From Hemiscyllium ocellatum (lineage: Eukaryota), in assembly GCF_020745735.1 (NCBI RefSeq), contig NC_083448.1:6942006-7006005 (forward strand): 64,000 bases of DNA, written 5' to 3'. The translations under genes and the position numbers were made by a program. Shown here one piece after another: positions 12,883 to 64,000 of this stretch (the first letter of the stretch is position 1; every line of letters begins with the position of its first letter). The notes beneath the pieces were generated by a model. It saw nothing but the letters and a program-made list of their open reading frames with translations. It ran no database searches and was not told the origin of the DNA.

Positions 12883-15800
12883 ATGCCTGGCCGTTGCCCG
12901 GAGTGTGGCTCCTCTGAGGTGGTCGAGGATTCCCACTACAGCCAGAGCCACCTGGTGTGCACCGAGTGTGGCTTCCTGCTGACCGAGGGGCTGCTCACCA
13001 CCACACGCTCCGAGGAGACTTTCTCCCAAGGTACCAGCCCCATCCTTCACAAGAGTCCCAACGGTGCAGCAAGATAGTCTGCACCGACCAGCCGACGAAC
13101 CGTCCTCCGAGGCGAAACTGAGGACTGCAGATGCTGCAGATCAGAGTCTAGGTTAAAGAGTGGTGCTGGAAAAGCACAGCAGGTCAGGCAGCACCCGAGG
13201 AGCAGGAACGTCGACGTTTCGGGCAAAAGCCCTTCATCAGGAATGAGGCTGGGAGCCTCCGGGGTGGAGAGATAAATGGGAGTGGGGTGGGTCTGGGGAG
13301 AAGGTATCTAAGAGTCAAGTCTGATTCAGGACACAGTTGAAGTGCTTCAGGGCAGAGGAGATGACCTGGGGGTTGCAGTGAGAGAGAGAGAGACTCACTG
13401 AGATCTTTGTAGAGAGAAGAGAATTTCTTCAAGGTTGGCATCCTGGCAAGTGGATTTGCAGTAAGGTTATAATCAACTAGGCGCAAGTGAGGACTGCAAA
13501 TGCTGGAGATCAGACCCAGTTCCCCCACCTGTAATTAGCTTGGGAAGTCCACCTGCACATATTTGGACTTTGGCAGCGGGAAACACATGCAGACATGGGG
13601 AGAATGTGCAGACTCCACGCAGACAGTCACCTGGATCCTGGTGGCACCTATGGTCGCGTGGTGATCCAGTGGTTAGCATTGCTGCCTCACAGCGCCAGGG
13701 ACCTGGGTTCGATTCCCTCCTCGGGCGACTGTCTGTGTGGAGTTTGCACATTTCTTCCCTGTGCCGATGTGGGTTTTCTCTGGACGCTCCAGTTTCCTCC
13801 CACAGCCCACTGTGCCTCGGTACACATGACAATAAATTTCAGTTCAATTCAATTCACAGTCCAAAGATGTGCAGGTTAGGTGAATTGGCCATACTAAATT
13901 GCCCATCGTGCTAGTCACGGGTAAATGTTGGGAAATGGGTCTGGGTGGGTTACTCTTTGGAGGGTCGATGTGAGCCAAATGGTCTGAGGGAATCTCATCT
14001 AAAAAAGTGCCTGAGACCGGAATCAAACACGGGTGATGATAGCCACTGTGCCACCCCACTTCTGAATGATTCATGCAGTAGTTCCCTGATCTTGAGCAAT
14101 ACACACGAAATAAGGGGATCCCATTGGACCAGCAGAGCTTATATTCATCCCTCTTAAATATCTGGGGGAAGGGAAGATTTGCTATGCCTACTGCTCATGA
14201 TTGCCACGATGGTTGAGAAACTTGAATTGTCTCCAAAATATAGACTAGCTCGTAACGCTTATTCAGTAGCCTGCCTATGCAATTTTTAAATGCCCCTCTC
14301 TGCTTCTTGTGATAAACATTTTTCTTTTTCTAACCTGCATTCTCTTGCTGCAGGCTCTGAATCACTGGAAACATTCTTTCTCAATTTCTTTATGCTTTTT
14401 TTTAACTCTAACTCTTCAATCTTGATAATAATGATGAAAGAAAAGTCAAAACTCTTCATTCATAAATAAAACCATACACTGGATATCTAAATGAAAAATA
14501 GAAAACATCGGAGAATCTCAGCAGGCCTGGCTGAATTTGTGGAGAAAGAAACAGAATTAATGTTTTGACATTGATTATGACTCTTTTTCATCTGAAGATG
14601 TTGCCAGACGTCTGTAGCATTTTCTGCTTTGGTGGAGTCAGAAATATATAGCATGGAAACAGACACTTCGGTCAAACTCGCCCCATGCCATCCAGATATC
14701 CTTAATTAATCCTGTCCCATTTGCCAGCATTTGACCCATATCTTTCTAAACACTTCCTGTTCATGTACCCATCCAGGTACCTTTTAAATGTTGTATTTGT
14801 AACAGCCTCCACCATCTCCTCTGGCAGCTTATTCTATACATGCAGCACCTGCTGCATGAAAAAAATTGCCCTTGGATCCCTTTTGAATCATTCAAATTAT
14901 AATTCCTTTTTTGTTTGTGGTTTATTTCAGAACTGTCTGTCTCTGTGTGTTAGAGTGGTGATTATGATCAAAGGAGATTTTTATTCAGTCATATACTGAT
15001 GAGAATTACCTTGCTTAGTTTTGTCCTGCCCAAGTTATGGGATTAATCATAAATTGTTTATTTTTGTTTAAGTTATAAACTTGGTGTCCAAGATGTGTTA
15101 TCTCTCTAGTCTGCTTGGGAACAATTGGGCAATTTTGAGGGTCATTAAATAGTTTAATTTCACTTTGTTGTAAATCCAGTGATAATTAAGGCTGATTTTA
15201 ATTTGGCTTACTATCGCTGGTTGTAACATAATTTCATTACACAAGACAGTGCCCTAGGTGAACTGCACATAGTGCAGTCTGAGGGAAATTTTCTGCAAAA
15301 CTTGAATAATACCTTAATTGTCCTATGTTATTCCTCTTACCAGAACATATATTAAGCTTTTGAACAGTCTTCCGAAGTTGAGGCATCACTTTTAACGTTT
15401 TGGGAAATTAAGCTTCAAACTCCATCTTCTCTTCCACCCAAAGTATCATTAATATCTTGACATTTTGGGGAGGAGAAATGACACGCACATTGGGTACCAG
15501 TGAGAACGTGCACATGGAGGAAGAAGATCTGTGCTGGGGAAAGGTGTATACATGTCTCAATGTTAAATGGCATTGTTGAACGTTGTTTGTTTCTATCTTT
15601 TTTCACAGCAGTGAGATATAGTGAGAGCACGGCAGAGGTGAAAAAGCCTTGTCGCAACCAGATACAAGGTAAGATATGAACAGTGAAAGGAGAGGTCACA
15701 AGCCCTCACCAGAAATTAATGTTTTGGTTTGATCATCCTTTGTCTACAACTGATGTTTTTTAGGAACCGTTCTTATGCTTTGGTCACTAACATTGTACTA

Positions 15801-18800
15801 AGTGTTTCAAAGCGAGAAATGCGAAGTGATGCATTTTGGAAGGTCGAGCTTGAATGCTGAATACAGGATTAAAGATAGGATTCTTGGCAGTGTGGAGGAA
15901 CAGAGGGATCTTGGTGTTCATGTACATAGATCCCTCAAAGTTGCCACCCAAGTGGATAGGGTTGTTAAGAAAGCACATATGCTGTTTTGGCTTTCATTGA
16001 CAGGGGAATCGAGTTTTAGAGCTGTGAGGTTTTGCTACAGCTTTACAAGTCCCTGGTGAGACCACACTTGGAATATTGTGTCCAGGCTTGGTCGCCCTAC
16101 TATAGGAAAGACACAGAGGCTTTGGAGAGGGTGCAAAGAAGGTTTACCAGGATGCTGGAGTGTTTGTCTAATGAAGAGAGGTTGACTAAGCTCAGAATTT
16201 TCTCGCTGGAGAGAAGGAGGAAGAGAGGTGACCTGACCGAGGTATACAGCGTAATGAGCGGCATGGATAGAGTCAATAGTCAGAGACTTTCCCCCAGGGC
16301 AGGATTGACTGGCATGAGGGGTCATCGTTTTAAGATATTAGGGGAAAAGGATAGAGGAAACGTCAGAGATAGGTTCTTCATGCAGAGAGTTGTGAATGCA
16401 TGGAATGCGTTGCCAGCGATGGTGGTAGAAGCAAAGTCATTCGGGACATTTAAGCGACTGCTGGACATGCACATGGACAGCAGTGAATTGAGTGGTGCGT
16501 CAGTTAGGTTATTTTATTTTACATTAAGATTAATCTTCGGCACAACGTTGTGGGCCGAAGGGCCTGTTCTGTGCTGTATTTTTCTATGTTCTAAAGCCAT
16601 GGTTTGAGGTTGGGACACTCGGAAGGTAATGTTATCTGTCTGAAAACAACATGCACCATACATTGAGGCTAGACATGAAATCATGTTGATTCAGTGTCAG
16701 TGTTTGGTCCCTGAGGGGAGATGAACTGATGGCTGAGAGCTGAAGTGTTCATTGGCAGCACTATCTCAACTGTTCACTTGGAGGAAGGTAAGTAGGGATT
16801 TTGTGTGTGTGCAAGAGGGAGATGACCTACCCAGCCTTGACAAATATTTGGAATTAATCAAAACAAAGGAAATTGGAGACCTCCTTAGTTTTACATATGT
16901 GATCTTGCCTTTTTAAAGTGAAGGTCTTACTGTAATTTAGAAACAGTTGTGAACAGCAATCTCTCTCAAATACAAAACTGACCAGCTTTCATTGCTGTTG
17001 ATTTCGAGGGTTCACTCACATTGGAGAACTTCTGAGCTGTTCCAAATAATGTTGTGGGATTTTTTACAACCCATCTCCGAGGGTATCAATGTCTCAGGCA
17101 GAAATAGTCACTTTCAACAGTGTAGCTGCCACAGTGCAGAACTGGCCCTGACTTTAAATAGTGCGCCAGTCCCTCATTGTTTCTGAGTACAAGGTGTTGC
17201 CAGTTATATTATTACTACTTGTTTCCTGGCGCTACTGCTCTAACCTGGTCGTTCTCCAAATCTGCACCTCTCTCTCTTCTCTCACTCTTTGTCCAGGTCA
17301 GAAGAGGGTACACGACCTGTGTCGGATTTTGCGAGTACGTCCACTTGTCGAAGACACAGCCAGCGAGCTTTATCTGAAAGCGTATGAACATCAAAGCTTC
17401 CTGCATGTCACTCTGGAGAAGAAAGAAGCCTTGGTGGGCTGCTGTGTTCACATCTCCTGTCGCCAGCACAATTGGCCTCTGACCCTGAGTACCATCTGCT
17501 CACTGCTTCACGTGGAGCCCACCCTGTTCTCCACTGTCTACCAGCACCTGCTGAAAGAGTTAAGATTGGATATTCCAACTCTCAGCCTTCTGGATCTTGT
17601 GAAAACTCACTGTGATGGGTGAGTATATCCACCTTTTATCCTCGAACTTGCACCTAGCATCCACTGTGTTTAAGTAGCTTCACTGCTGCAAATGAGACTC
17701 ATTAAAGCTGCTTTGCTATAAGTAAGGATTGTAAGAAACAGGCAGTCAGGTACAATGTCTGTGTAAGTTTGGCATTCTGCCTCTGTAGGCCACAGATGTT
17801 GTTCTCTTTCCCACCCACTCTAACCGGATATCTGATTTCACTGGCTTGTGGGTCATTTATCCTGTTTTTTGGGTGTACTCTATCCTTGTGTGGGTGGGGG
17901 TCACAAATATGCAGAACACTTGGGTTCAAGCTGCCCGATGCAACGGTGTCATTTGCAATGAGTTAAGTCTCATTTGAAAGAAATCCCATCAGCAAGCTCA
18001 GGATGCAATATCCAAACATAAAATGGGTTCAAGTGATCAGTTTAATCCTGAGTTAATGAACAAATGACCTCCTCTTTTCTTCCTCCTCCTTTCCTGATAA
18101 TGTCCTGATCCCCCTGCCCTCGCTACAGCCCAGGTTTGTCCTCAGACTCTGCATCGTGCCTGTTTCCACCCACATCCCTGATTGAATGTGTTCACTGCAT
18201 TCTCTGAGCCTGTGATGGGGTTTCCTGTCAGTTTTGAGGCTAATGCGATTTATGGGCACCCAGGTGCTATTGATCACAGCTAGTGGTTTCTACTACCCCA
18301 CCATCGCTCCATGAGGTGTTGCTTAGCTCACATGTTCTGATTGAGGGGCACTGGAGGTACAATAACAAACAAAGACCCTCTATTTCAAACAACCTGACCA
18401 CCATAAATGACATGCTGTGTCTCACGAAAGTTCAATTTCCCCCACCACAGGTAAAACCATGCTGGCATCTTTATTACAAAACAGACAGGCAGAGACTGGA
18501 AGAACATAGCAAGCCAGGCAACGTTGGGAGGTGGAGAAGTTGATGTTTCGAACGTAACCCTTCTTCAGGACACTTTGAACATGCTTGCTATGTTCTTCCA
18601 GTCTCTGCCTGTCTGTTTAGGATTCCCACATCTGCAGGTTTTTTGTCATCTGTGTTATCACATGGAGATAGGTAGCCAAACCAAATCAGACTTTCAACTC
18701 TTCTTCACAACACAGGGACATTAAATCGTCAAGCACCCCAGTCAGTCAGTCCAGTGGTTCAGAGCTATAAATAACCAATTCCAAACTTTGTGAATAGAGC

Positions 18801-21800
18801 CATATACAGTCTGGAAACAGACCCTTTGGACCAATTAGTCCATGCCAATCATATTCCCAAACTTGCCCCACTTGCCTGCGTTTGGTCCATATCTGACAGA
18901 TTGGTGTGAAACTTGAAAGCGTTCAAAAAAAATTGACAAGGATGTTGCCAGAGTTGGAGGGTTTGAACTATGGGGAAAGGCTGAATAGGCTGGGGCTATT
19001 TTCACTGGAGTGTTGGAGGCTTGGGGGTGGCCTTATAGAGATTTATGAAATCATGTGGGGCATGGATAGGGTGAATAGACAAGATCTATTCCCTGGGGCA
19101 GGGGAGTTCCAAACCAGAGGGCATCGGTTTATGGTGAGAGGGGAAAATTTTAAAGGGATCTAAGGGGCAACCTTTTCTTGCAGAGACTGGTGAGTGTATG
19201 GAATGAGCTGCCAGATGAAGTGGTGGAGGTTGGTACAATTACGACATTTAAAAGACATCTGGATGGGTATATGAGTAGGAAGGCTTTAGAGGGAAATGGG
19301 ACGAGATTACTTCAGCATATCTGGTCAGCATGGACAAGTTGGATGAAAGCGTCTGTTTCTGTGCTGTTCATCTCCATGACTCTATATCCCTCCAAACCTT
19401 TACTATTCAGCTACTTAGCCAAATGTATGTGAAACGTTTTAGCTGAATTTGCATCAATCACTTCCTCTGATTGTTCATCTCACACGCTAAGCACTCCTGG
19501 TGAAAAACGGTTTCCCATCACATCCTTTTTAAATCTTTGCTCTCTCGCCTTAAAAATATGCTCCCTGGTTTTCAGCTCCCCCATCCAAGGGACAAGACCT
19601 TTGCTATCCACCTTACCAATGTCCTTGATGATGATGTAAACCTCTATAAGGTCTCCCCTTCAATCTCCTACACTGTAGTCAAGAAATTTCCAGCCGATGC
19701 AGCCAACTTTTATAAGTCAAGCCCTCCAATCCTGGCAACATCCTGGTAAATCTTTTCTGAGCCCTCTCCAGTTTAATAATATCCTTCCTGTAACAGGGTG
19801 ATTAGAACTGCACGAAGCGTGATGTGATGGAAATTTCCCCGCTTGCCCGATAGCAGCAGCTCCAACAACACTCAACAAACTCGACAGCATCGACAAGGAG
19901 GCAGCCTGCTTGGTTGGCACAACATCCACAACTATTCACTCACTCCGTGGGAACACCATAACCTGTAAGTTATCCTCGAAGCCACTCACCATCCTGTCTT
20001 GGAAATATATCGCCATTCCTTCAATGTCAGTGGATCAAGGTCCTTGAATTCAAGAAGCAGCTCATCACCACCTTCTCAAGGGCAATTAGGGATGGGCAAT
20101 AAAATGTTGGTCAGCCAGCAACATTGACTGAAAAAAATTTAATTTCCAGACCCTAGTTTTGTACGAAAAACAAAAGGCTTAATTATTCATGAAATACACA
20201 ATAACTTTAGCAGCATGTTGTTTAATGTCTGTGCCTTAAAGTGCAAACTTTTTTTTAATCCCATTTACAGTGAAGACAGACAAATGAACAGTGAAGGGAT
20301 ACATTATAAAACAAACAAAACTGATCAGATCATTTCAATGGCATTGTTTCACTGGCATAAATGTGCACCCAGTAGTTGATTTTTCTGAAATGTTGATCAG
20401 GATCACTTTATCAGTTCAGCAAGGCACAGGAAGCGATACTTCTTAGTCAACTCTCCACTCTTTGGGCTTCCTGAAGCTGGTTCAATAGGTTAGACAGGAA
20501 GCATGTAAAATCTTCATGCTGTTTCAGAAAACATAGATTAAAAGAAAACTTTATTTCTAGCTCCATCCTGACAGACTGAATGACACTTCCTGAGGCCTCA
20601 ATTACTATTGAACAACTGCCCAGCTGTTTGTACACAGGATCTCCTCCAGACTTGCCAGAACCAATTCTCAGGTACTGACCTCACTTAATAGCCAACCTCT
20701 TTCTTTTCAAACACAAAACTCTTCCCTGGGATCGATGCGTAAGTTCAAACCTTGTAAAGAAACAAACTTGTTCGTTCTTTTAACTCTAAGCTGTTTCAAA
20801 GTCATTTCCATTTCTCAATTCAAAATTAATGAAATAAATAAAAATCACCTGCGGGATCTTGATAAATTTGGATTTAATTATCCCTTCGTCTATAACTTGT
20901 GTGAAGTGTCGACAATCAACTCTTAATAACTAGAATGTTTTAAACTAGGAAACTGGTGAATTGACCTCCAAAGTCTCCAAATGACTTCGAATGTGAGGAG
21001 GCCAAAACAACAATAGGTATTTGCAGGATTCCAAACAAGATCTTAGAGGTCTTGCCGATGGGTAAAATACTTTTGTCTTTGAGACCTGATGAATGCACCT
21101 TAAACTCAGGTTCCCTAGCTATTATTTATATCTACCTTTAGAGATGTCCACAATGTGAACCCAGATTTCCTTTCTTCATACATTGTCTTTGATGCTGTTC
21201 TCTTGAATGATGTGTGTGATGTGTATCAAGCATAACTCTATACATTTCAAATACACATTGCCGAATGGCTGGGTAATGGTCTGGGGACCCAGGTCCAAAT
21301 CCCGCCATGGGAGATGGTGAATTATAAATTCAATGAAGATCTGGAATTAAGAGTATGATAATCATAAATCTGTTATCAATATCAGGAAAACACCCCACTT
21401 GGTCCACCAATGTCCTTCCTACAAGTGACTTCAAAACTCAGAGCAACGTGGTTGATTCTTATCCTCCCTCTGGGTAATAAATGCTGAACCAACCAGTGAA
21501 GCTCTCCTCCCATCAATGAATACGCAAAGATTTTCATTTGTCAGCAAATTTACACTTCGTTAATAAAAACTGGAGAGAGCAATCGTTTCAGGGCTGATCC
21601 TGGTGACCAGTCTCCCAACCAATTGAGATCTGTCTTGCTTTTTCTGGCAAGTCAGTTCCCAGCCCACGTCAATGTATTATCAGTAACCATGTACAGTCCT
21701 TTCATCAAAGTACTAGTCTCATCCCTTGTTGCCCTTGAGAAGTGGTGGTGAGTTGCCTTCTTGAACCACAATGCGGCAAGAGAGGAAAATCAAGGGTTTT

Positions 21801-23536
21801 GACCACGCTACAATGAAGAAGCGGCAATATATTTCCAAGTCAGGATGGTGAGTGGCTTGGAAGGGAACTTGCAGGTGGTGGTGTTCTGTGTATCTGTTGT
21901 TTTTGTCCTTCTACATGGAAGTGGTTGGTAGTTTGAAAGGCACTGTCAGGATCTTTGCTGAATTTCTTTAGTGCATCTTGTGGATGGTGTCCACTGCTGC
22001 TCCTGAGTGTCAGTGCTGGAGTGGGTGAATGTTTGTGGATGTGGTACCAATCAAGTGGGCTGCTTCCTTGTTGATCCTGTTAAGTTTATTGAATATTGTT
22101 GGAGCTTCGCCCAACCAGACCAAGTGTGGACTTTTCCATCTCATTTAGGATTCTCACTGCAGAATGCCTAACCTCTGCAGCCCCAGTATTTATTAAGCAA
22201 GTCCAATGTGTATATCAACATCCTGGGTATTCTGTTGACCAGTGTGGGATTTAGTGATGGTGATATAATTGAATGCTAATGGGTGCTGGTTCGATTTTCA
22301 CTTGTTTGACATGATCATTACCCATCAATGCTAATATTACCTGCCACATATTAGCCTGAACCTGGATTTTGTCCAGGACTTGCTGCATCTGGAGATGGAC
22401 TGCTTCAGTATCTGAGGAGTTTGGAATGTTACTAAGTCATCAACAGTGAACATTCCACTCCTAACCTTATGATGGAATCAAAATTGTGGATGAAGCATTT
22501 TAAGGTGGTTGAGTTTTTGACACTACCCTGTGGTTGGTGGGCCTGAAATGGTGGGCCTGCAATTAGCCAGAGCTAATCTTGTTTTGTGCAAGCTCAAACT
22601 CCAACCAGCTCCTTATGATAATGTTCTGGTGAGTTTTGTTAGGGCTTCTTGATGTTGGGGACAGTCATTCTCCCCTCTGAAATTCAGCTGTAACGAAATC
22701 TGGAAAACAGAGTATGTTATTGCTGTACGTAAGTGTATCCAGTCTATTTTTCTTCTGAATGTCACTCTAATTGTAGGTTTTTTGTTTTTGTCCCTCTCTG
22801 CAGTTTTAATTTGTTCCAGAATTCTGCATCAATCCCATCTCAGTTTCTGGAGAATAAAGACAAGGTGGTGGAACGTGCCATGCAGCTTGTGGAGTTGGCC
22901 AGTGAGACATGGCTAGTGACTGGGAGACACCCAGTGCCTATTATCACGGCAGCTGCTTACCTGGCCTGGCAGTCACTGCTACCTGGACACCGTCTGAAGT
23001 GCAGCCTGGGAAAGTTCTGCAAGTTGGCCGGAGTCAGGCAGCCCCCACCTGCCTCTCAGCGGGTGAAGGAAATGCTTGACATTCTAGTCACGTTGGCATC
23101 ACAACTGGCCTGGCTGGTCCCACAGCAGCTTGATGCCAAGACTGTGGTGAAATATACCGATGATATTCTCCGCCACCGTACCCTGTTACTCAGGCAAACG
23201 CTAAGTCTCGCGAGTACAAAGAACACAGATGGGCAGACAGACCCAAGTGAAGGAATAGAAACGAGTGGGGAGGCTGAGGCTGGGAACGGTAGTGGGGAGA
23301 TGGTACCCTCCCTTGTGGAGCACCCAGATACGTCAAGGCGGAAGCGCACAATGCCAATCTTCCTCCCGCCATGTCTCAAACAAAGGAAATGGAAGAAGGC
23401 ATGCCCAGAAGCAGAGACCACCCTCCACACTGAGCCAACCACGGGAGAGGAGGAGATATCTGACAGTGAAATTGAGCAGTACTTGAGGACGCCCGAGGAG
23501 ATGGCAGCCTTCAAGTCAGCACGTGCCATCCTGTAA
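12883..23536 (+). CDS. BRF2: Transcription factor IIIB 50 kDa subunit BRF2, complete CDS (~420 aa)
   Basis: Exons: 12883-13030 ([30 protein letters not shown], zinc ribbon), 15609-15668, 17297-17618 ([22 protein letters not shown]), 22804-23536 ([17 protein letters not shown]...LPPC...[12 protein letters not shown]). Total 1263 nt, GT-AG, in frame. Confidence 0.96.
13111..13513 (-). mobile_element. Penelope-like element remnant with partly tandem pseudo-LTR and hammerhead motif
   Basis: tgaggactgca(g/a)atgctg occurs at ~13119 and ~13488; minus-strand CTGATGAAGGGCTTTTGCCCGAAACGTC at 13213-13240. Confidence 0.7.
13550..14000 (+). mobile_element. HE1-like SINE(s): a minus-strand fragment followed by a plus-strand copy
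   Basis: tRNA-like A/B boxes (gtggttagcattgctgcctcacagcgccagggacctgggttcgattcc). Confidence 0.8.
15810..16593 (+). mobile_element. CR1 LINE 3' fragment (BRF2 intron 2)
   Basis: [32 protein letters not shown]; ctatgttcta tail. Confidence 0.9.
18480..18618. mobile_element. Penelope-derived palindromic element
   Basis: Inverted arms aacagacaggcagagactggaagaacatagcaagc / gcttgctatgttcttccagtctctgcctgtctgtt around a degenerate minus-strand CTGAAGA..GAAACATC motif. Confidence 0.6.
18900..19385 (+). mobile_element. CR1 LINE 3' fragment
   Basis: [33 protein letters not shown]. Confidence 0.85.
19390..20110. mobile_element. Mixed LINE remnants (CR1 minus; other LINE 3' end plus)
   Basis: Shares gccactcaccatcctg and caccaccttctcaagggcaa motifs with 21720-21860 and 34120-34270. 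Confidence 0.55.
21715..22700 (-). mobile_element. Degenerate LINE remnant
   Basis: gttgcccttgagaag..ggtggtgag 3' end plus decayed RT-like sequence. Confidence 0.55.
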
Positions 23537-24677: not shown

Positions 24678-48555
<23,878 letters not shown>

Positions 48556-49139
48556 GGCTCTCCCGGCGGGGGAAGCCCGTCTCCCGGTCTCTCTCTCTCT
48601 CTCTCCCTCCCTGCTTTCTTCCTGCAGCCACCCCCTGAGTCCAGAGCCAGGAGAAGGAGGAAGGAGCCCGGGGACAAGGGAAGGGAGGGCCACAGTCTGA
48701 CAGTGTGTGTGTAGGAGGAGTGAAGGAGGAGGTAGGTACAGGAGGGCAGGCTGTAGGAGGAGTCGGGTGTGTGTTTGTGTGGTTTGCAAGGTTCAGGATG
48801 GGGATTTTGAGGAGGGGTCAGTTAGGTGTTTGGTACTGGGGGGGGGGGGGGGGGGGGGGGTGTTGGAGTTTGTAGGTCACCAAAGTGCTGCAGGTGGGGG
48901 AGGAGGAGAGGTCAAGGTCTTGGCTCCGAAGATTGAGATGTTTGTTGCAAGAGTGAGGTGACAGGTTGGGGGGTTCGGTCTTTGGAAGAAAGTTGGGGGT
49001 CTTGGGTTCGGGTCATTCGGTCAGGGAGGTGGGGGGGGGGAAGGTCAAGGCGAGGGAAGGCCTCAGGTCTCAGGGTGGGGGAGAGGAGAGGTTTCTGGAG
49101 CGGAAAGGTAAGGTCGCGGGGAGTGGGATTGAGATCACT

Positions 49140-50750
49140 GGGTGAGGGTGCGGTCTCCGGGTGTGTTCTGGGTGAGGGTGCAGTCTCCGGGTGTGTTCTG
49201 GGTGAGGGTGTGGTCTCGGTGTGGTCTGGGTGAGGGTATGGTCTCGGTGTGGTCTGAATGAGGGTGTGGTCTCCGGGTGTGTTCTGGGTGAGGGTGGGGT
49301 CTCTGGGTGTGTTCTGGGTGAGGTTGCGGTCTCCAGGTGTGTTCCGGGTGAGGGTATGGTCTTGGTGTGTTCCTGGTGAGGGTATGGTCTCAGTGTGTTC
49401 TGGGTGAGGGGACGATCTCCGGGTGTGTTCCCGGTGAGGGTATGGTCTCAGTGTGGTCTGGATGAGGGTGTGGTCTCTGGGTGAGGGTACGGTCCTGGTG
49501 TGTTTCGGGTGAGGGTGGGGTCTCCGGGTGTGTTCCGGGTGAGGGTGGGGTGTCCGGGTGTGTTCCGGGTGAGGGTGGGGTCTCCGGGTGCCGTCTGGGT
49601 GAGAGTGGGGTCTCCGGGTGTGTTCTGGGTGAGGGTGGAGTCTCCGGGTGTGTCCCGGGTGCGGGTGGGGTCTCCGAGTGTGTTCCGGGTGAGTGAGGGG
49701 TCTCCGGGTGAGGGTGCGGTCTCCGGGTGTGTTCTGGGGAGGGCGCGGTCTCTGGGTGTGTTCTGGGTGAGAGTGCGGTCTCTGGGTGTGTTCCGGGTGA
49801 GGGTGGGGTCTCCGGGTGTGTTCCGGGTGAGGGTGGGGTCTCCGGGTGTGTTCTGGGTGAGGGTGCGGTCTCTGGGTGTGTTCTGGGTGAGGGTGCGGTC
49901 TCCGGGTGTGTTCCGGGTGAGGGTGGGGTCTCCGGGTGTGTTCCGGGTGAGGGTGGGGTCTCCGGGTGTGGTCCGGGTGAGGGTGGGGTCTCTGGGTGTG
50001 TTCCGGGTGGGTGTGTTCCGGGTGAGGATGGGGTCTCTGGGTGTGTTCCGGGTGAGGGTGCGGTCTCCGGGTGTGTTCCGGGTGAGTGAGGGGTCTCCGG
50101 GTGTGGTCCGGGTGAGGGTGGGGTCTCCGGGTGTGTTCCCGGTGAGGGTATGGTCTCTGGGTGTGGTCTGGGTGAGGGTGGGGTCTCCAGGTGTGTTCTG
50201 GGGAGGGGTGCGGTCTCTGGGTGAGGGTGCGGTCTCCGGGTGTGTTCCGGGTGAGGGTGGGTTCTCCGGGTGTGTTCTGGGGAGGGTGGGGTCTCCAGGT
50301 GAGGGTGGGGTCTCCGGGTGTGTTCTGGGGCGGGTGGGGTTTCCGGGTGTGTTCTGGGGAGGGTGGGGTGTCCGGGTGTGTTCTGGGTGAGGTGGGGTGT
50401 CCGGGTGTGTTGCGGGTGAGGGTGGGGTCTTCGGGTGTGTTCTGGGGAGGGTGGGGTCTCCGGGTGTGGACTGGGTGTGGGTGGGGTCTCCGGGTGTGTT
50501 CCGGGTGAGGGTGCGGTCTCCGGGTGTGTTCCGGGTGAGGGTGCGGTCTCCGGGTGTGTTCCGGGTGAGGGTGCGGTCTCCGGGTGTGGACTGGATGAGG
50601 GTGGGGTCTTCGCGTGTGTTCTGGGTGAGGGTGCGGTCTCCGGGTGTGTTCAGGTGAGGGTGGGGTCTCCGGGTGTGTTCTGGGTGAGGGTGCAGTCTCC
50701 GCGTGGGCACAGGGTGAGGGTGGGGTCTCCGGTTGGGCACTTGGTGAGTG
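49140..50750. repeat. 30-bp minisatellite GGTGAGGGTG(G/C)GGTCTCCGGGTGTGTTC(C/T)G, ~50 copies, upstream of FHIP2B
   Basis: Directly visible tandem array that decays gradually towards ~50980. Confidence 0.95.
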
Positions 50751-52552: not shown

Positions 52553-55500
52553 ATAGAACATAGAACAGTACAGCACAGAACAGGCCCTTCAGCCCATGAT
52601 GTTGTGCCAACCACTGATCCTCATGTACGCACCCTCAAACTTCTGTGACCATATGCATATCCACGAGTCTCTTAAATGTCTCCAATGACCTTGCTTCCAT
52701 AACTGCTGCTGGCAACGCATTCCATGCTCTCACAACTCTGTGTAAAGAACCTGCCTCTGACATCCCCTCTGTACTTTCCTCCAACCAGCTTAAAACTATG
52801 ACCCCTCGTGTTAGCCATTTCTGCCCTGGAAAATAGTCTCTGGCTATCGACTCTATCTGTGCCTCTCATTATCTTGTATACCTCAGTTAGGTCCCCTCTC
52901 CTCCTCCTTTTCTCCAATGAGAAAAGTCCGAGCTCAGTCAACCTCTCTTCATAAGATAAGCCCTCCAGTCCAGGCAGCATCCTGCTAAACCTCCTCTGAA
53001 CCCTCTCCAAAGCATCCACGTCTTTCCTATAATAGGGTGACCAGAATTGGACGCAGTATTCCAAGTGCGGTCTAACCAAAGTTTAATAGAGCTGTAACAA
53101 GATCTCACGACTCTTAAACTCAATCCCCCTGTTAATGAAAGCCAAAACAACATATGCTTTCTTAACAACCCTGTCCACTTGGGTGGCCATTTTAAGGGAT
53201 CTATGTACCTGCACACCAAGATCCCTCTGTTCCTCCACACTGCCAAGAATCCTATCCTTAATCCTGAACTCAGCTTTCAAATTCAACCTTCCAAAATACA
53301 TCACCTCACATTTATCCAGGTTGAACTCCCATCTGCCACCTCTCAGCCCATCTCTGCATCCTGTCAATGTCCCGCTGCAGCCTACAACAGCCCTCTATAC
53401 TGTCAATGACACCTCCAACCTTTGTGTTGTCTGCAAACCTGCTGACCCATCCTTCAATCCCCTCATCCAAGTCATTAATAAAAATTACAAAGAGTAGAGG
53501 CCCAAGGACAGAGTCCTGTGGAACACCACTCACCACTGACAACCAGGCAGAATATTTTCCTTCTACTACTACTCGCTGTCTTCTGTTGGTCAGCCAATTC
53601 TGTATCCAGACAGCTAAGTTCTCCTGGATCCCATTCCTCCTGACCTTCTGATTGATCTACCATGGGGAACCTTATCAAATGCCTGACTGAAGTCCACATA
53701 CACCACATCCACAGCTCGACCCTCATCAACTTTTCTCGTCACATCCTCAAAGAACTCGATAAGGTTTGTGAGGCATGACCTGCCACTCACAAAGCCGTGT
53801 TGACCGCATTTAATCAAGCCATGCTCTTCCAGATGGTCATAAATCCTATCCCTCAGAATCCTTTCCAACACCTTGCAGACGACAGACGTGAGACTTATTG
53901 GTCTGTAATTGCCCTATTTCCTTTCTTGAAGAGAAGAATTACATTTGCCTCTCTCCAGTCCTTAGGTACGACTCCAGTGGAGAGCAAGGATGCAAAGATC
54001 TTCGCAAGTGGCGAAGCAATCGCATTTCTCGTTTCCCAAAGCAGCCGAGGACAAATCTCGTTCAGGCCTGGCGACTTGTCAATCTTAATGTTTGACAAAA
54101 TTTTCAGCACATCAGCTTCCTCTAGTTCTATCCATTCCAGCATGCACACCTGCTCTTCAAATGTTTCATTCACTACAAAGTTTGTTTCTTTCGTAAAGAC
54201 AGAAGCAAAATACTCATTTAGGGCTTCCCCTACCTCCTCAGACTCCACACACAAGTTCCCTATGCTATCCCTGATCGGCCCTACTGTTTCTTTGACCATT
54301 CTCTTATTCCTCACATAACTGTAAAATGCCTTTGTGTTCTCCCTAATCCGTTCTGCCAAGCCTTTCTCGTGCCACCTCCTGGCTCTTCTCAGACCATTTT
54401 TGAGCTCCTTCCTTGCCTGCCTGTAACCCTGTAAAGCTGAGCTTGACCCTAGCTTCCTCCACCTTACGTAAGCAACCTTTTTCCTTTTGACGAGAAGTTC
54501 CACCGCTCTCGACATCCAAGGTTCCTTTATCTTACCACTTCTTGCCTGTCTCAGAGGGACATATTTATTCATCACTTGCAACAACTGTTCCTTAAACAGT
54601 CTCCACATGTCTATAATGCCTTTCCCATGGAACAATTGCTCCCAGTCCATGCTTCCTAACTCATGTCTAATCGCATCATCGTTTCTTCTTCCCCAATTAA
54701 ATATCCTCCCATTTTGCCTAATCCTTTCCTTCTCCATAGCTATGTAGAATGTGAGGCAGTTGTGGTCACTATCACCAAAATGCTCTCCCACCACAAGATC
54801 TGATACCTGCCCCGGCTCGTTTCCGAGCACCAAGTCTAGGATGGCCTCTCCCCTCGTCGGCCTGTCAACGTACTGAGTTAGGAAACCCTCCTGAACACAC
54901 CTTACAAAAACAGCTCCATTCAAATCTTCTGCTCGAAGGAGGTTCCAATCAATATTGGGAAAGTTAAAGTCACCCATTGCAACAACCCAACTATGTCCAC
55001 ACTTTTCCAAAATCTGCCGACCTATGCTTTCTTCCATCTCCCTGCTGCTATTGGGGGGCCTGTAGTAAACCCCTACCGAGGTCACTGCTCCCTTGTTGTT
55101 CCTAATTTCCACCCATACTGACTCGGTAGGCAGATCTTCCTCGACAATGGAACCTTCTTTAGCTGCGATACCCTCTCTGATTAGTAGTGCTACACCCCCT
55201 CCTCTTTTTTCCCCCCTCCCCATTCTTTTTAAATGCTCTAAACCCTGGAACATCCAGCAACCATTCCTGCCCCTGAGAAACCCATGTCTCTGTTATGGCC
55301 ACAACATCACAACACTAGGTACTGATCCATGCTCTAAGTTTGTCACTTTTATTTCTGATACTCCTTGCGTTAAAGCAACCACACTTTAACTGATCCCTTG
55401 GTTCCTTCCCAGGAAAATCCTTCCTACCAGCTGGTCTACCTCTTGCTATTGCCTCATCTGCATCAACTCTCACCTCCAGTATACAACTCAGGTTCCCACC

Positions 55501-57260: not shown

Positions 57261-58037
57261 TCTGCACTCTGCCTGTTTGTTAAGTGAGTTACCACATAGA
57301 ATCCTAGGAAGTGTTTGCCATCGCCAACTTACCCTTCATGGGGCATCTCAGCCTTGTTTCTGTTAACTCCAGACAGGCTAGGACATAGCGAGGAAGCCCT
57401 TTGAAAGGGCGATCGGGCCTGGAGAGCATGTTTATGCTCACTGCGGTCAGCATCACCACTTTGCATCAGGACCTTTCAAAGTTTTTACGCTGTGCTTTGA
57501 ATAAAGGATCAATTGGTCACTTCCTGTTAGGTTAAGTTGACCAGAGGGTTGGTGACATCTGTGGTCCTGTTGCTGCTGTGGCCTGGGTTGGCAGATGGCG
57601 GGGGATGGAGGTGGGGCCAAAATATAATTTGGAAACTTGGGAGGGGGGGGGAACACACATTTGGTTTAGAAAGTCCGCATTTCCAAAATAAACATGTCGT
57701 CATTTTGCGTTTACAACATTAGCTTGCATTAAAAGTAAACAGAGTGATGCTATTGTAGGCTTTTGGAATCCAACTGTCCAGTCAGGTCATAGTCCAATTC
57801 TTTTTCATCTTATTACAGAGTCACCCTTGATACAGCTCACAGACTGTCATGAAAACCAGACCTCTTCGTGGTGTTACGTTTCTTTAAGTGTCAGAGATGA
57901 CAAGTGAATCCAGTATTGTGTTTTCCTTCGCATGATCCACATGCTGACGCCAATATTTACATTGCTGAGATTCCGCAAACTGGGCATATTCACATGACAG
58001 TTCTTTGCAAAATAATTGCATTTTTGCACACGTTTGC

Positions 58038-58825
58038 TTAGACTGAAGACTTCATCTCCCATTCCTGTAAAGAGAGGAGGACCACGTAAGTTGGGATAGC
58101 GCAGTGGCGCAGTGAGATGTGTCCCTGATCAATGTGATTGAGATTAAATGTCAATGAAATAAGCACCCTGGGTCGGAATTCACAGTTTGTGTTTCTCCCG
58201 AACTAAGCACCTGAGCTGAAGGACTGTGGTTTCCAATGCAACAGACCTGCAGAGTTGAAAGAAGATAGGAAATAGGAGCGGAGGTGGGCTATTTGGACCA
58301 TCGAGCATGCTCCACTATTCAATAAGATCATGGCTGATCTCTAATGGACTCAGCTCCACTTACTGGCCCACTCATCATAGCCCTTAAATCCCTTACTGTT
58401 CAAAAGTCTGTCTTTTCCTCAAAAACATTCCACAAGGTCGCTTAACTATTGCATTCGGCATGAAATTCCACAGATTCGCAACTCAGTCTGAAATCTGCTC
58501 CCCCTTATTTTGAGGCTGTGCCCCTTTTTTTTTTGTTCTGTGAGAGTTGCAAAGTTGCCACAAATAGCAAGGGGAAAGTGACCATTTTGTGAAGTTTGCT
58601 GGACATTGGTCAAGAGACCAGGGAAAGGTTCTATTCTTCATAGTCACTGAGCTGTACAGCATGAAAACAGACCCTTCAGTCCATGCTGACCAGATATCTG
58701 AAATTAATCTAGTCCCGTTTGCCAGCATTTGGTCCATAACTCTCTCAACCTTTCCTATTTTTATACCTATCCAGATGCCTTTTAAATCTTGTCCCAGCCT
58801 CAACCACTTCCTCTGGCAGTTCATT

Positions 58826-58861
<36 letters not shown>

Positions 58862-61039
58862 CCCTCAGTGTGAAAACATTGCTCCTTCGGTCTCTTTCAA
58901 ATCTTTTCCCCTCCCACCTTAAATCTCTGCTTGCTAGCTTTGGACGTCACCCCAAGGAAAATACTGTGTCTATTTATCCTATCCGTGCCCCCTCATGATT
59001 TTGTAAACCTCTATCACGTCACCCCTCAGCCTCCGATGCTCCAGGGAAAATAGCCCCAGCCTGTTTAGCCTCTCCCTGCAGCTCAAACCCTGACACCCTC
59101 CTTGTAAATCTTTTCTGAACCCTTTCAAGTTTCACAACCTTGTTCCTGCAGCGGGGAGACCAGAATTGCACGCAAAGTCCCAAACGTGACCGAACCAATG
59201 TCTTGTACAGCCGCACTTTCTTTAACACTTCCGTGTGGTTTCTCACACACCCAAAAGGCGGGGGGGGGGGGGGGGGGGTGGAAATCAGTCTCAGTTTAAT
59301 GCCTCCCTTGAAAGACAGCACATCCAACATGACAGCACCCCTTCAGTCTTGTGTGAATAGATTTTGCACTCAAGTCATGACGGGGGAACCTTAAACCATG
59401 ACTTCAAAAGCAAGATTGCTAACTGCTGAGTCATGGCTGACCCTGCTGTGGGGATGCATGAGCCACTTTTGTGAACCAAATGGTTCACGGGCTCTGAAGT
59501 TTGATTTTCTTTTCTGTCATAAAATCAGCAGAAAGGTGATGGAATGGAGTGTGCAGGCCAAAATTGATGGAGGGGCAGATCGTATTGAGGAGGTAGGGAG
59601 AGAGTGGGCAAGGAATTTGCAGATGAAATACACTGTGGGAAAAGTGTAAGGTCGTGCATTTTGGTTCGGAGAATTGACTATTTTTAAAACAGGGAGAAAG
59701 ATTCCGAAATCTGAAGTGTGAAGGGACTTGAGAGTCCTCATTCAGGTTTCCTTTAATGGAAACATGCAGGTTGGGTCAGTTAATAAGGCAAATACAATGT
59801 TTACATAGACCTCTGTCAGATTAGATTAGATTCCCTACGGTGTGGAAACAGGCCCTTCGGCCCAACCAGTCCACACCGACCCTCCGAAGAGTAACCCATC
59901 CAGACCCATTTCCCTCTGACTGAAGCACCTGACACTATGGGCAATTTAGCATGGCCAATTCACCTAAACCTGCACATCTTTGGACTGTGGGAGGAAACCA
60001 GAGCACCCGGAGGAAACCCACGCAGACACGGGGAGAATGTGCAAACTCCACACAGTCAGTCGCCTGAGGCTGGAATCAAACTTGGGACCCTGGTGCTATG
60101 AGCCACTGTGCCGCCTGCTGTTGTCATTCATCTGGAGAGGACTAGAATATTAAAGTAGAGATGCACTTCTGAGGCTTTATAAGGATCTGGTCAGACTGTA
60201 TTTAGAGTACTGTGAGCAATTTTTAGCCCCATACCTCAGGAAACAAGTATTGGCCCTGGAGCGGGTCCAGAGGACAGTGATACCAGGAATAAAAGGCTTA
60301 ACATATGGGGATCATTTGAGGACTCTTGAACTCTACTCAATGGAGTTGGGAAGGATGAGGGGAGATCTGACTGAAACTTAGAGAATCCTGAACGGCCTGG
60401 AGAGAGTGGACGTTGGGGTGATGCTTCCATTGGCAGGAGAGACGAGGACCCAAGGGCACAGCCTTCGAGTCAAGGGAAGACCATTTCGACCAGGGAGAAG
60501 GAGACACTTCTGAAGCCAGAGAGTGGCGAATCTGTGGAATTCATGACCACAGAAGGCTGTGGAGGCCTGGTCACCGAGTATATCTAAAACAGAGAGAGAT
60601 AAGCTCTTGATTGCTAAGGGGATCAAAGGTTACAGGGAGAAAGCAGGAAAATGGGATTGAGAAGCCTATCATCCATGATTGAATGATGGACCAGACTCGC
60701 TGGGCTGAATGGCCTAATTTCTGCTCCTCTGGTGTTGTGGTCTTAAAATCTCTGACATGTGACAGTTCTGGCTAAAAGTGCCACTGACTAAAAGGCAAAT
60801 TCTCTTTCTCTCTCCACAGATGCTCCCCGACCTGCGGCTATCCAGCGTTCTTCTGTTCTTCCCAAGAGGGATCTCTGAATCGCAGACCAACTCGCAAAGA
60901 GATCGTCAAAGAGGTGAGGGATACATACCTTTGTTTTCTGAAGGACTCTGCCCTTTTCGACCACCGTGATGGACGGTGTCCTTCTCAGAGTGCTTTTGGC
61001 TGACGCTGTGCGTCTTAAGATTGGGCTGATAATCGGGCC
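58038..61039 (-). CDS. AFAP1-family (actin filament-associated protein) gene, last two coding exons; rest lies beyond the right edge
   Basis: Exon 60929-61039 (acceptor tttctcgttcaattgacag, donor AAAG|gtatgt, 111 nt, phase 0) encodes GPIISPILRRTASAKSTLRRTPSITVVEKGRVLQKTK. Exon 58038-58064 (acceptor ctcctctctttacag) encodes EWEMKSSV*. The joined GRVLQKTKEWEMK matches the family C-terminus as recalled (AFAP1L1 GRVLQKAKEWEMKKT, AFAP1 GHVLRKAKEWELK, AFAP1L2 GTVLQKAKEWEKK). The paralog is not assigned. Confidence 0.8.
58260..59215 (-). mobile_element. CR1 3' fragments containing a (CA)n microsatellite (58827-58860)
   Basis: LYKTLVRSRLGLCVQFWSP..LERVQKRFTR. Confidence 0.75.
59520..60745 (+). mobile_element. 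CR1 fragment interrupted by a minus-strand HE1-like SINE (59818-60115)
   Basis: Decayed CR1 RT C-terminus on both sides of the SINE. Confidence 0.75.
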
Positions 61040-61857
61040 CTGTCAATTGAACGAGAAATGAGCAGTGACATTGATATCAAGTCGCAGCAGATTGGCAGCA
61101 GCTCTGCGAGACTGAGCAGAGCCCAAATGATGGCATTCCATCAAATCTGATTGAGTCCGGCCCAGGTCAAATCAAAAGGCCAGTTATAAATGAATATCAA
61201 GAAAGAAATGCAAAAGCTACATTTGTTGCTGGCGAAAAATTGCTCAAAAAACTTGCTCTTTCAGACTCCGACTCCTGTTTAAACTGGTGGAGTTTGGATC
61301 TGAACTAAGAGAGCCAAGTGGGTGATGAGAGTCCACATCTGAACAGATGGGAAAAGATTGAAACGTTTTCGATGTTCAAATTGAGGTTGGGGATTTGGTG
61401 GATGTTTAGTCCGAGGAGCAGGTCAGGGATGAGTAGAATGTTATGAGATTTGTCAAACAGCTCTGCTTCAAACTCCAAAAGATATCTGCTTCTGTTTAAA
61501 AATGACGGAGCATTGTGTACGTGTGAAGTTAATGTCTTGACTGAATGAACAGCGCAAGGCAAAGTCAGGTCACACATTCCTGAGACGAGTGGAGAAATGC
61601 TTCAGACTTCCAACTGTCCCACTCGAGGGACTCAGCTTGACAACTCGAGGCCTCAGGTGGTTTACAGCTGTGAGTCCATCTCAGACTGACCTGACTGTCT
61701 AACTGTGCTTTCCACAATCCCAGCCCTAACCCTGCAGGGGCCATGAAAATATGGGTCCCGGTTCGTGAGTTCAAGTCCCACTTGAAGATCTGAGTCCTTT
61801 ATTCAGGCTGATACTCTGAGTGCTCTGTTGAGGAAATGCTGTGAGAGGTGTTGTGAT

Positions 61858-62510
61858 GAGATTAGATTCCCTACAGTGTGGAAACAGGCCCTTCAGCCCA
61901 ACAAGTCCATCCCTCCTCTCCGAAGAGTAACCCGCCCAGTCCCATTTCCCTCTGACTATTGCATCTAACATTATGGGTTAATTTAGCGCAGCCAATCCAC
62001 CCTAACCTGCACATCCCTTGGCACTATGGGTAATGTGGTACTGTTCGCCGAGCTGGGAATTTGTGTTGCAGACGTTTTGTCCCCTGTCTAGGTGACATCC
62101 TCAGTGCTTGGGAGCCTCCTGTAAAGCGCTTCTGTGATGTTTCCTCCGGCATTTATAGTGACACATGCTATATCACTATAAATGCCGGAGGAAACATCAC
62201 AGAAGTGCTTCTCAGGAGGTTCCCAAGCACTGAGGATGTCACCTAGACAGGGGACAAAACGTCTGCAACACAAATTCCCAGCTCGGCGAACAGAACCACA
62301 ACAACGAGCACCCAAGCTACAAATCTTCTCACAAACTTTGAACTATGGGCAATTTAGCACAGCCAATCCACCCTAACCTGCACATCCCTGGACACTATGG
62401 GTAATTTCCCATCGCCAGTCCACCTAACCTGCACATCTTCTGACTGTGGAAGGAAACCGGAGCATCCGGAGCAGATTCTCCCAGAGACGGGAGAATTTGA
62501 TCCGATTGTA
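61858..62510 (-). mobile_element. HE1-like SINE carrying a nested palindromic Penelope-derived element (62034-62341)
   Basis: SINE consensus; inserted near-perfect hairpin at 62034-62300. Confidence 0.8.
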
Positions 62511-62569
62511 ACCTCAAATCCATGCTCCCATTCACCCCTCACTTGCTTGGCATAAAATCCATCTATGTG

Positions 62570-64000
62570 GAGAGTGTGGTGCTGGAAAAGCACAGCAGGT
62601 CAGACAGCATTCGAGGAGCAGGGGAATCGACGTATCTGGCATAAGCCCTTCATCAGGAATGAGGCTTGTGGGCCGAGGGGGCGCTGAGGGGTAAACGGGA
62701 GGGGGGTGGGGCTGGGGGGAGTTAGCTGAGAATGTGCTAGGTAGATGAAGGTGGGGGAGAAGGTGCTAGGTCGGAGTGGAGGGTGGAGGGGATAGATGGG
62801 AAAGACGATGGACAGGTCAAAAGGGCGGTGTCGAGTCGGAGGCTTGGGACTGGGATCAGGTGGAGGGAAGGGAAATGAGGAAACTGGTGAAATCCGCATT
62901 AATCCCGTGGGGTTGCAGGGTCCCAAAGCGGGATATGAGGCGTTCCTTCTCCAGGCGTCAAGTGGTTAGGGTTTGGTGATGGAGGAGGCCCAGGACCTGC
63001 ATGTTCTTGACAGAGTGGGATGGGGAGTTGAAGTGTTCAGCCACGGGGCGGTGGGATTGGTGGCTGCGGGTGTCCCAGAGATGTTCTCTGAAACAACCCG
63101 CAAGAAGGCGTCCTGTCTCCCCACTGTAGAGGAGACCACACCGGGTGCAGCGGATGCAGTAGGTGACATGTGTGGAATTACAGGTGAATTTCGGTGGTTT
63201 GTGGAAGGATCCTTTGGGGCCTTGGACAGAGAGACGGAGGAGGTGTGGGCACACGTCCTTGCGGTGGCAAGGGAAGGTGCCAGGAGTTGGGGTGGGGGAG
63301 GGATGGATCTAACAAGGGAGTCGCAGAGGGAATGGTCTCTCTGAAACGCTGATAGGGGAGGGGAGGGAAATGTATCCCTGATGGTCTGGTCTGTTTGTAA
63401 GTGGCAGGAGTGGTGGAGGATAATGCAATGTCTACGGAGGTTGGTGGGGTGGAAGGTGAGGACCGGGGGGTTCTGTCCTTGTTGCGTTGGGAGGGGTGGG
63501 GGTTGAAGGGTAGAGGTGTAGGAAATGGTGCAGATGCACTGGAGGGCACCATCGGCCAGGTGGGAGGGGAAATTGCGGATAGGATTTTCTGTGGTGGAAT
63601 TGGTCATCCTGGGAGCAGATGCAACAGAGGCATTAGGGATGGCATTTTCACAGGAGGTAGGGTGGGAGGTGCTGAAGTCCAGGAAGCTGTGGGAGTTGGT
63701 TGGTTTGTAGTAGGTGTCGCTGGTTAGTCGGTTGCTGGAGGTAGAGGTGGAGAGCTTCTGGAAGGGGAGGGAGGCGTCCACGATGGTCCGGGTGAACTTG
63801 AAGTTGGGGTGAAAGGTGTTGTGAATTTGCTGAACTGTTCAACCTCCTCATGGGAGCACGAGGTGGTGCTGATACCGTCATTGATATGGCGGAGGAAAAG
63901 GTGGGGAATGGTGCTAGTGTAGCTGCGGAAGATGGACTGTTCCACATACCCAACGATGAGGCAGGTATAGCTGGGGCCCATGCGGGTCCCATGGCTACCC
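62570..64000 (-). mobile_element. Penelope-like retroelement (RT C-terminus, GIY-YIG endonuclease, pseudo-LTR), frameshifted; continues past the right edge
   Basis: MGPSYTCLIVGYVE...FLRHIND (decayed RYIDD), TYYKPTNSHSFLDF, VTYCIRCTRCGLLYSGETGR...FREH...PVAEHFN. Confidence 0.9.

Follow-up and report, generated by a model that had tools for sequence, protein, structure and literature searches.

The locus described here raises the question of which gene two short exons, lying upstream of an FHIP2-type gene in the shark Hemiscyllium ocellatum, belong to. The exons are on contig C191 of the 3.98 Gb genome, and the window is the whole 64,000-base stretch that was analysed, C191:6942006-7006005; positions are given as the C191 coordinate minus 6,942,005, also where this numbering is extended beyond the right-hand edge of the window. 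A first-pass annotation of the window had assigned the exons to a gene of the AFAP family, whose members are adaptor proteins of actin and signalling, and we use AFAP-x as the label for the gene that ends in them. The analysis makes it very likely that this gene is intact and probably expressed, that the two exons form its 3′ end and that it encodes a fourth ancient AFAP paralogue, alongside AFAP1, AFAP1L1 and AFAP1L2 (also known as XB130).

The exons were first recognized from the C-terminus of human AFAP1, which ends ...VLRKAKEWELKNGT. The parts of AFAP-x that lie in the window are the following.
61040..64000 (minus strand): in-window part of intron 15, placed by protein-to-DNA mapping (tblastn) with the proteins P0003 and P0019 and by a junction search.
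60929..61039 (minus strand): exon 16 of the 17 coding exons, 111 bases long and in phase 0 at either end, with an AG acceptor and a GTATGT donor.
58065..60928 (minus strand): intron 16, 2,864 bases with GT...AG ends.
58038..58064 (minus strand): exon 17, the last coding exon, with the acceptor ctctttacAG; the 3′ untranslated region runs on leftwards below 58038.

Read on the minus strand (61039-60929), exon 16 is directly preceded by ttcaattgacAG and directly followed by GTatgt; from its acceptor caattgacAG it runs GGCCCGATT...ACAAAG, and its translation is GPIISPILRRTASAKSTLRRTPSITVVEKGRVLQKTK. Exon 17 (GAATGGGAGATGAAGTCTTCAGTCTAA) encodes EWEMKSSV and a TAA stop. Both junctions are in phase 0 with canonical splice sites, and the coordinates, the phase and the strong splice sites of the two exons are all as the first-pass annotation had given them. 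The same holds for their position on the strand of FHIP2B, about 9.5 kb upstream of its ATG: the FHIP2-type start codon is at 48555, 9,483 bases past the AFAP-x stop. Intron 16 is full of interspersed-repeat debris and also contains a (GT)n tract and a stretch of poly-C; no open frame spans it.

With the 37 residues of exon 16 as the query, a profile-free search of 1.8 billion representative proteins found P0003, a 683-residue protein of Pristis pectinata. The exon is 86% identical to its C-terminus, and the two-exon signal is therefore not a chance one. The same query against the shark's own genome returned the self-match only, the C-terminal exons of the paralogues remaining unlocated by that search. 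The remainder of the gene was mapped on the window plus 200 kb to its right, with P0003, then with the closer Chiloscyllium punctatum protein P0019 and finally by the junction search. The resulting model has 17 coding exons on the minus strand and spans about 73 kb (C191 about 7,000,043-7,072,961). Fifteen of the 17 lie beyond the right edge of the window (base 64000), which holds only the last two coding exons. In the extended numbering, and all on the minus strand, the exons beyond the window are these.
130956-130941: exon 1, 16 coding bases.
102767-102618: exon 2.
99239-99156: exon 3.
97861-97770: exon 4.
91746-91641: exon 5.
90027-89819: exon 6.
87441-87262: exon 7.
85497-85405: exon 8.
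84996-84912: exon 9.
79784-79573: exon 10.
77326-77184: exon 11.
75359-75245: exon 12.
73679-73562: exon 13.
70146-70009: exon 14.
65380-65193: exon 15, which encodes a short helix and the motif KSGSELNLL.

Exon 1 reads ATGAACAATCAAAAAG followed by GT and encodes MNNQK. In the junction search all 16 introns had GT-AG ends, and the joined exons give 2,067 bases or 688 codons with a single stop at the end. The product is 96.5% identical to P0019 across 688 ungapped columns. The gene, of 17 exons, is intact, and the two window exons do form its 3′ end.

Whether the gene is also in use was assessed from the fractions of sampled sequence words of two test stretches that occur in sequencing runs. 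Parts of both stretches occur in two small runs from one sample, which comprise 150 and 253 million letters. For 60880-61100, which includes exon 16, both hold 0.42 of the words, and the exon-only expectation is 81/191 = 0.42; for 57865-58264 both hold 0.45, and the value predicted beforehand was 170/370 = 0.46 if only 57865-58064 were present. The large runs contain all of the words (1.00), and in small runs from two related organisms the fraction for the terminal-exon stretch is 0.10-0.24. The two runs from the single sample are putatively RNA, and as a DNA sample of a 4-Gb genome they would be far too small. Word fractions of exon size fit a spliced transcript without showing a junction, and from them AFAP-x is probably expressed.

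A locus that is silent or decaying in this shark would account for two further observations, namely that no run recorded as RNA holds the AFAP-x test stretches and that a scan of 47 kb found no CpG island upstream of exon 2. Such a copy is nevertheless very improbable, given that all 17 exons are open with canonical splice sites throughout, that the product is so close to a protein of another genus, that its motifs are invariant across about 24 species and that the very small runs, including those of the related organisms, hold exon-only fractions or parts of the terminal exon. The pseudogene was rejected on the open exons, the splice sites and the cross-genus conservation.

The AFAP-x protein matches the Pfam PH family over two stretches (E = 3.9e-19), and the closest solved structure is the second PH domain of human KIAA1914, that is AFAP1L2/XB130 (2COF; E = 2e-12). 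Both results bear out the assignment to the AFAP family. An AlphaFold model built on 24 orthologues has PH folds at residues 193-288 and 338-427, with predicted local distance difference test (pLDDT) values of 74-91, and a confident N-terminal helical hairpin at residues 3-45. The first-pass annotation had expected two PH domains and a coiled coil; the two PH domains are present, and for the coiled coil there is only one short helix of 21 residues predicted with low confidence (587-607, pLDDT about 50-63), the rest of the model being disordered. The C-terminus is predicted to be disordered, yet its sequence is conserved.

Conservation of motifs was followed over 24 species (sharks, coelacanth, salamanders, turtle, alligator, birds, bichir, sturgeon, gar, bowfin and teleosts). 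Two N-terminal tyrosine motifs are invariant across all of them: EDA(D/E)-Y-M-x-M, with Y63-M-x-M66, and (S/C)YEEAEP, with Y135-E. The DSDSSHYESYGEE motif (DSDSS-YESY) before the first PH domain (PH1), both PH cores, N-x-YMDDPFGQ, KAGSE(M/L)NLL and the C-terminal PLL(R/K)RTASAKS.L(K/R)R.PS...EKGKVLQKRKEWE(M/T)K are invariant or nearly so. The last of these falls in exon 16, which in the shark carries PILRRTASAKS.LRR.PS...EKGRVLQKTK, nearly invariant among the 24 orthologues; the exon as a whole is 86-95% identical to those of the Pristis and Chiloscyllium orthologues. The EWEMK of exon 17 is common to the orthologues, and a proline-rich stretch is present and poorly conserved.

Membership of the family leaves the question of which member the gene is. 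Queried with P0003 and with the PH1 and PH2 portions of that protein, the genome yielded AFAP-type exons at four places only. Matches to the Pfam AbLIM_anchor family were likewise found at four places only, each upstream of an AFAP locus and on the same strand (4/4).
C191 (minus strand): AFAP-x, found by the genome search.
C57:39.926-39.943 Mb (minus strand): AFAP-type locus, genome search.
C1:148.628-148.661 Mb (plus strand): AFAP-type locus, genome search.
C49:29.736-29.762 Mb (minus strand): AFAP-type locus, genome search.
C191:7.112-7.121 Mb (minus strand): AbLIM_anchor gene, Pfam match.
C57:40.185-40.205 Mb (minus strand): AbLIM_anchor gene, Pfam match.
C1:148.205-148.219 Mb (plus strand): AbLIM_anchor gene, Pfam match.
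C49:29.964-30.007 Mb (minus strand): AbLIM_anchor gene, Pfam match.

All four AbLIM_anchor genes end in a villin-headpiece exon (C191:7,090,896; C57:40,151,596; C1:148,363,779; C49:29,938,056). LIM exons, three at each locus, lie further upstream at C57, C49 and C1. None was found near the C191 gene, the sole LIM match on that contig being 15 Mb away, and because of this difference the three partners are read as ABLIM genes and the C191 partner as dematin-like. Matches to the RAI16-like (FHIP) family mark two genes of FHIP2 type, the first in the window and the second at C57:40.60 Mb (plus strand). At AFAP-x the FHIP2 gene is downstream and on the same strand. The proposed slot between dematin and FHIP2B, with all three genes on one strand, is thus borne out by the AbLIM_anchor, headpiece and RAI16-like matches.

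The order on C57 is AFAP (minus), ABLIM (minus), FHIP2 (plus), and it is there that the arrangement of AFAP1L2, ABLIM1 and FHIP2 is found. This is the order of human 10q25, where the FHIP2 gene is FHIP2A. The PH2 exons of the four loci, scored against the second PH domain of human AFAP1L2 (2COF), gave 110.2 bits for C57, 65.5 for C49, 60.1 for C1 and 38.8 for AFAP-x. Because it combines the highest score with the AFAP/ABLIM/FHIP2 order, the C57 locus is, as judged from sequence, the AFAP1L2 orthologue; ABLIM1 is the neighbour of AFAP1L2 in human (PMC4068053). By the same score AFAP-x is the least AFAP1L2-like of the four shark loci. The PH1 signature divides the loci in another way, reading FLLRKKRFGQW at C1 and C49 and FLWRKKWLGQW at C57 and AFAP-x. 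C1 is provisionally named the AFAP1 locus and C49 the AFAP1L1 locus, on their likeness to the human sequences and on their pairing in the tree described below. A search of the PDB with the PH1 exon of the C1 (AFAP1-type) locus gave no match. The PH1 exon of AFAP-x is 40-51% identical to those of the three other loci, the intron inside PH1 has an identical exon boundary (between ..LL and CYK..) at all four, and the acidic tyrosine motif SSxYESY(D/G)E is present just before PH1 at all four.

These loci bear directly on the suggestion that AFAP-x is an AFAP1L2 or AFAP1L1 orthologue that has moved beside dematin. The NCBI names of its orthologues (AFAP1L2, AFAP1L1 and AFAP1-like) would agree with such a move, as would the PH1 signature that it has in common with the AFAP1L2-type locus. 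It is scarcely credible all the same, since AFAP1L2-, AFAP1L1- and AFAP1-type loci are separately present in the genome, each downstream of an ABLIM gene of its own that bears LIM exons, since AFAP-x scores lowest of the four against the human AFAP1L2 domain, and since its clade is set apart with full support. A relocated AFAP1L1 or AFAP1L2 was rejected on these three counts, in line with the first-pass suggestion of a fourth ohnologue.

The distribution of AFAP-x in other species was taken from two protein lists, each the best 120 matches within 8,000 candidates, obtained with P0003 and with a turtle protein as queries. The P0003 list is wholly non-mammalian, with identities that fall from 61-82% in sharks and rays to 42% in coelacanth and 33-38% in turtles, crocodilians, birds, salamanders, bichir, sturgeons, gar and teleosts. 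In the turtle list, turtles are at 75-100%, ostrich and crocodilians at 66-69%, followed by birds, coelacanth at 50% and salamanders at 46-47%, down to teleosts at 40%. Orthologues are also present in bowfin. The gene is therefore retained in sharks and rays, as had been proposed, and is not confined to them. Nor is it hidden, being annotated at NCBI in more than 100 species. The names there are inconsistent (AFAP1L2, AFAP1L1 or 'AFAP1-like', each of the first two also with '-like', and different for isoforms of one swan gene), much as the first-pass annotation had predicted. Neither list has a mammal, squamate or frog among its best 120, although their orthologues would be expected above the listed teleosts. 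By these two lists AFAP-x has probably been lost in mammals, as first proposed, and apparently also in squamates and frogs.

Two observations on other fishes stand beside this distribution. For the chimaera Callorhinchus milii no AFAP-x is among the matches listed, though the FHIP2B-type protein P0228 is, on a 25-kb contig; the holocephalan gene may be unassembled or lost. Two sturgeon 'hypothetical proteins', P0001 (1514 residues, Acipenser sinensis, flagged UNVERIFIED_CONTAM) and P0002 (602 residues, A. ruthenus), have 26 and six tandem stretches, respectively, that resemble the 37-residue AFAP-x C-terminal exon at about 40% identity; these may reflect tandem amplification of the exon or an error of assembly.

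The neighbourhood of AFAP-x is kept in several of these species. The order in ostrich is a 428-residue AbLIM_anchor gene, a 671-residue PH gene, a 733-residue RAI16-like gene and a NUDIX gene, and in Kemp's ridley turtle it is a 501-residue AbLIM_anchor and villin-headpiece (VHP) gene, a 679-residue PH gene and a 741-residue RAI16-like gene. A 424-residue AbLIM_anchor+VHP gene is directly upstream of AFAP-x in gar, and in Anabas a 410-residue gene of the same kind adjoins it, inverted. The sizes of these neighbours and the lack of a LIM match fit dematin. Ostrich and turtle retain the shark's dematin > AFAP-x > FHIP2B order. The human order is DMTN-FHIP2B-NUDT18. In gar (locus L032) AFAP-x is followed by a 221-residue acetyltransferase gene and then a NUDIX gene, not by FHIP2B; gar FHIP2B (P0180) is on the same 78-Mb chromosome record and has thus moved within it.

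A maximum-likelihood tree was built from 199 PH-domain columns of 25 AFAP-x rows, including the window gene, and of the three shark paralogues, which were represented by their PH1 and PH2 exons; it is unrooted. The 25 AFAP-x rows stand apart from the three paralogues with support of 100/100, and the loci on C1 and C49 form a pair of their own (100/99), apart from the AFAP-x clade. The order within the clade is that of the species tree: cartilaginous fishes, then coelacanth and tetrapods, then ray-finned fishes. Since the clade spans sharks, rays, coelacanth, tetrapods and ray-finned fishes, with synteny kept, the duplication predates the split between cartilaginous and bony vertebrates.

How the duplication came about is a further question. 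The dematin > AFAP-x pair mirrors the ABLIM > AFAP tandem at the three other loci of the genome, and the human segments 4p16, 5q32, 10q25 and 8p21 are part of the classical chromosome 4/5/8/10 paralogy group. An origin in the two rounds of vertebrate genome duplication (2R), with AFAP1L2 as the nearest paralogue, is most likely, although the tree is unrooted. Alternatively, an ABLIM-AFAP(-FHIP2) block may have been copied on a small, segmental scale before the gnathostomes radiated; this would also be compatible with data that place the event only before the split of sharks from bony vertebrates, with no outgroup or cyclostome sequence in the comparison. Such a copy is unlikely in view of the number of ABLIM/dematin > AFAP tandems, which is exactly four, each on a contig of its own, with FHIP2 copies on two of these (C191 and C57), and of the split of AFAP1 and AFAP1L1 from AFAP1L2 and AFAP-x at 100/99, which is the pattern expected from two rounds. 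Of the earlier claim of a fourth 2R ohnologue, the fourth paralogue stands (four loci, a 100/100 clade and synteny), and the 2R timing is consistent with the data, the tree having no outgroup root.

The closest comparison is with AFAP1L2/XB130 (human 10q25.3). AFAP-x resembles it in its two PH domains, in the PH1 signature and intron position, in an N-terminal YxxM at a similar position (Y54 in XB130 and Y63 in AFAP-x), in the acidic SSxYESY motif before PH1 and in lying downstream of an ABLIM-family gene with an FHIP2 paralogue nearby. It differs in being a separate locus of the same genome with a PH2 score of 39 bits against 110 for the true orthologue, in having dematin rather than ABLIM1 as its upstream neighbour, in having, in place of the XB130 coiled coil, no more than a short predicted helix and in its own conserved C-terminal motif ...RRTASAKS.L.R.PS...EKGKVLQKRKEWEMK. 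It is also shorter, at about 600-740 residues; human XB130 is 818 residues long. AFAP1 (AFAP-110) and AFAP1L1 have the same family architecture and likewise lie downstream of ABLIM genes (ABLIM2 and ABLIM3). Their loci differ from AFAP-x in the PH1 signature, and they are grouped together in the tree.

Zebrafish si:dkey-220o5.5 and the AFAP1L1-like and AFAP1L2-like LOC genes of non-mammals are AFAP-x orthologues, as indicated by the UniRef name of the coelacanth protein P0009, which is taken from the zebrafish gene, and by the cyprinid members of the clade; all are uncharacterized. The AFAP family is stated to have three members (PMC4068053, PMC9835296, PMC5772338). In the literature searched a fourth was not described: 'AFAP1L3' is absent and 'dkey-220o5.5' appears in gene lists only. 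The gene is thus already in the databases and is unrecognized as a fourth AFAP member in that literature.

Two PH domains and N-terminal motifs that bind SH2 and SH3 domains are common to all AFAP proteins, and in XB130 the YxxM (residues 54-57) is phosphorylated by Src and docks the p85 subunit of PI3K (PMC4068053). A mechanism is proposed for AFAP-x because its invariant YMxM sits at the matching place. By analogy, AFAP-x would be a non-enzymatic scaffold like XB130: its PH domains would hold it at membranes, Src-type kinases would phosphorylate the N-terminal tyrosines and the phosphorylated protein might then dock SH2 proteins such as PI3K p85. The same grounds suggest the binding partners of AFAP-x and a role for it as a PH-domain adaptor carrying the invariant YMxM. 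We lean, with considerable reserve, towards seeing AFAP-x as a working fourth AFAP adaptor and 2R sister of XB130/AFAP1L2 that has kept the YMxM, has its own C-terminal motif and was lost independently in mammals, squamates and frogs.

Several points weigh against the account given above. All statements on the function of AFAP-x rest on analogy, and neither the actin-binding region nor the long coiled coil or leucine zipper described for AFAP1 and AFAP1L1 was found in it. The named paralogues in the tree are the PH-domain exons of this shark only, with no human, chicken or gar AFAP1, AFAP1L1 or AFAP1L2, and there is no invertebrate outgroup, so that the root, the 2R timing and a sister relation to AFAP1L2 are not established by it. 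The absence of mammals, squamates and frogs comes from the two protein lists and not from genome searches. The RNA nature of the two small runs is a guess by the tool only. In the gene model, exon 1 rests on one fuzzy match, for which about 0.006 chance matches are expected in the 47 kb searched.

On this account jawed vertebrates began with four AFAP genes and mammals lost one. The names AFAP1L1 and AFAP1L2 that AFAP-x carries in more than 100 non-mammalian genomes are then wrong as statements of orthology and will mislead cross-species comparison. The AFAP gene set of zebrafish and chicken differs from that of mouse, which bears on the knock-out phenotypes of XB130 and AFAP1. The ABLIM/dematin > AFAP tandem also provides a clean four-fold marker of the 4p16/5q32/10q25/8p21 paralogy group. 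Should AFAP-x further prove to be a working 2R sister of XB130, the three-member AFAP family would be the mammalian subset and the signalling roles given to XB130 may be split over two genes in most other vertebrates. Ohnologues missing in mammals are a common class, and the finding is a modest one that brings no new biochemistry.

The downstream neighbour was mapped with the FHIP part of the Narcine protein P0027, and its RAI16-like Pfam matches fall within the window.
24687..48555 (minus strand): FHIP2B-type gene, with exons mapped down to about 24687.
48511..48555 (minus strand): its first coding exon, with the start codon at 48555 and a GTGAGA donor.

This is the second FHIP2 gene of sharks, which carries the NCBI name 'FHIP2A-like'; sharks have a separate FHIP2A of 778 residues, and outside cartilaginous fishes the best matches of the window gene are named FHIP2B in gar, bowfin and coelacanth. 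In Narcine bancroftii, P0026 and P0027 (also 'FHIP2A-like' at NCBI) are read-through chimeras of AFAP-x and FHIP2B, in which residues 1-316 correspond to AFAP-x residues 363-678 (to ...EKGKVLQKTK) and are joined to FHIP2B exon 2. The last exon of AFAP-x and the first exon of FHIP2B are skipped. The read-through may be an annotation artefact or, more weakly, real co-transcription of the two genes.

Four other features were observed in the window. In the 9.5 kb that separate the AFAP-x stop from the start of FHIP2B there is, at 53895-55253 (minus strand), an open frame of 452 codons with an endonuclease/reverse-transcriptase domain of the long interspersed nuclear element (LINE) type. A G-rich minisatellite at 49138-50732 (30-base unit, about 53 copies, 77% matches) starts about 580 bases before the start codon of FHIP2B, on its upstream side, and gives long spurious open frames on both strands. 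On the other side, a BRF2-type gene at 17161-23536 (plus strand) lies tail-to-tail with the FHIP2B-type gene; it has two long open exons, a TFIIB repeat and a BRF2-like C-terminal cyclin repeat (194 bits). Human BRF2 is on 8p11, on the same chromosome arm as FHIP2B. Finally, about 9 kb of GC-rich (58-67%), strongly G-skewed tandem repeats at 4397-13000, with units of 17, 19/39, 79 and 191 bases, give rise to proline-rich and glycine-rich pseudo-open reading frames of up to 653 codons.

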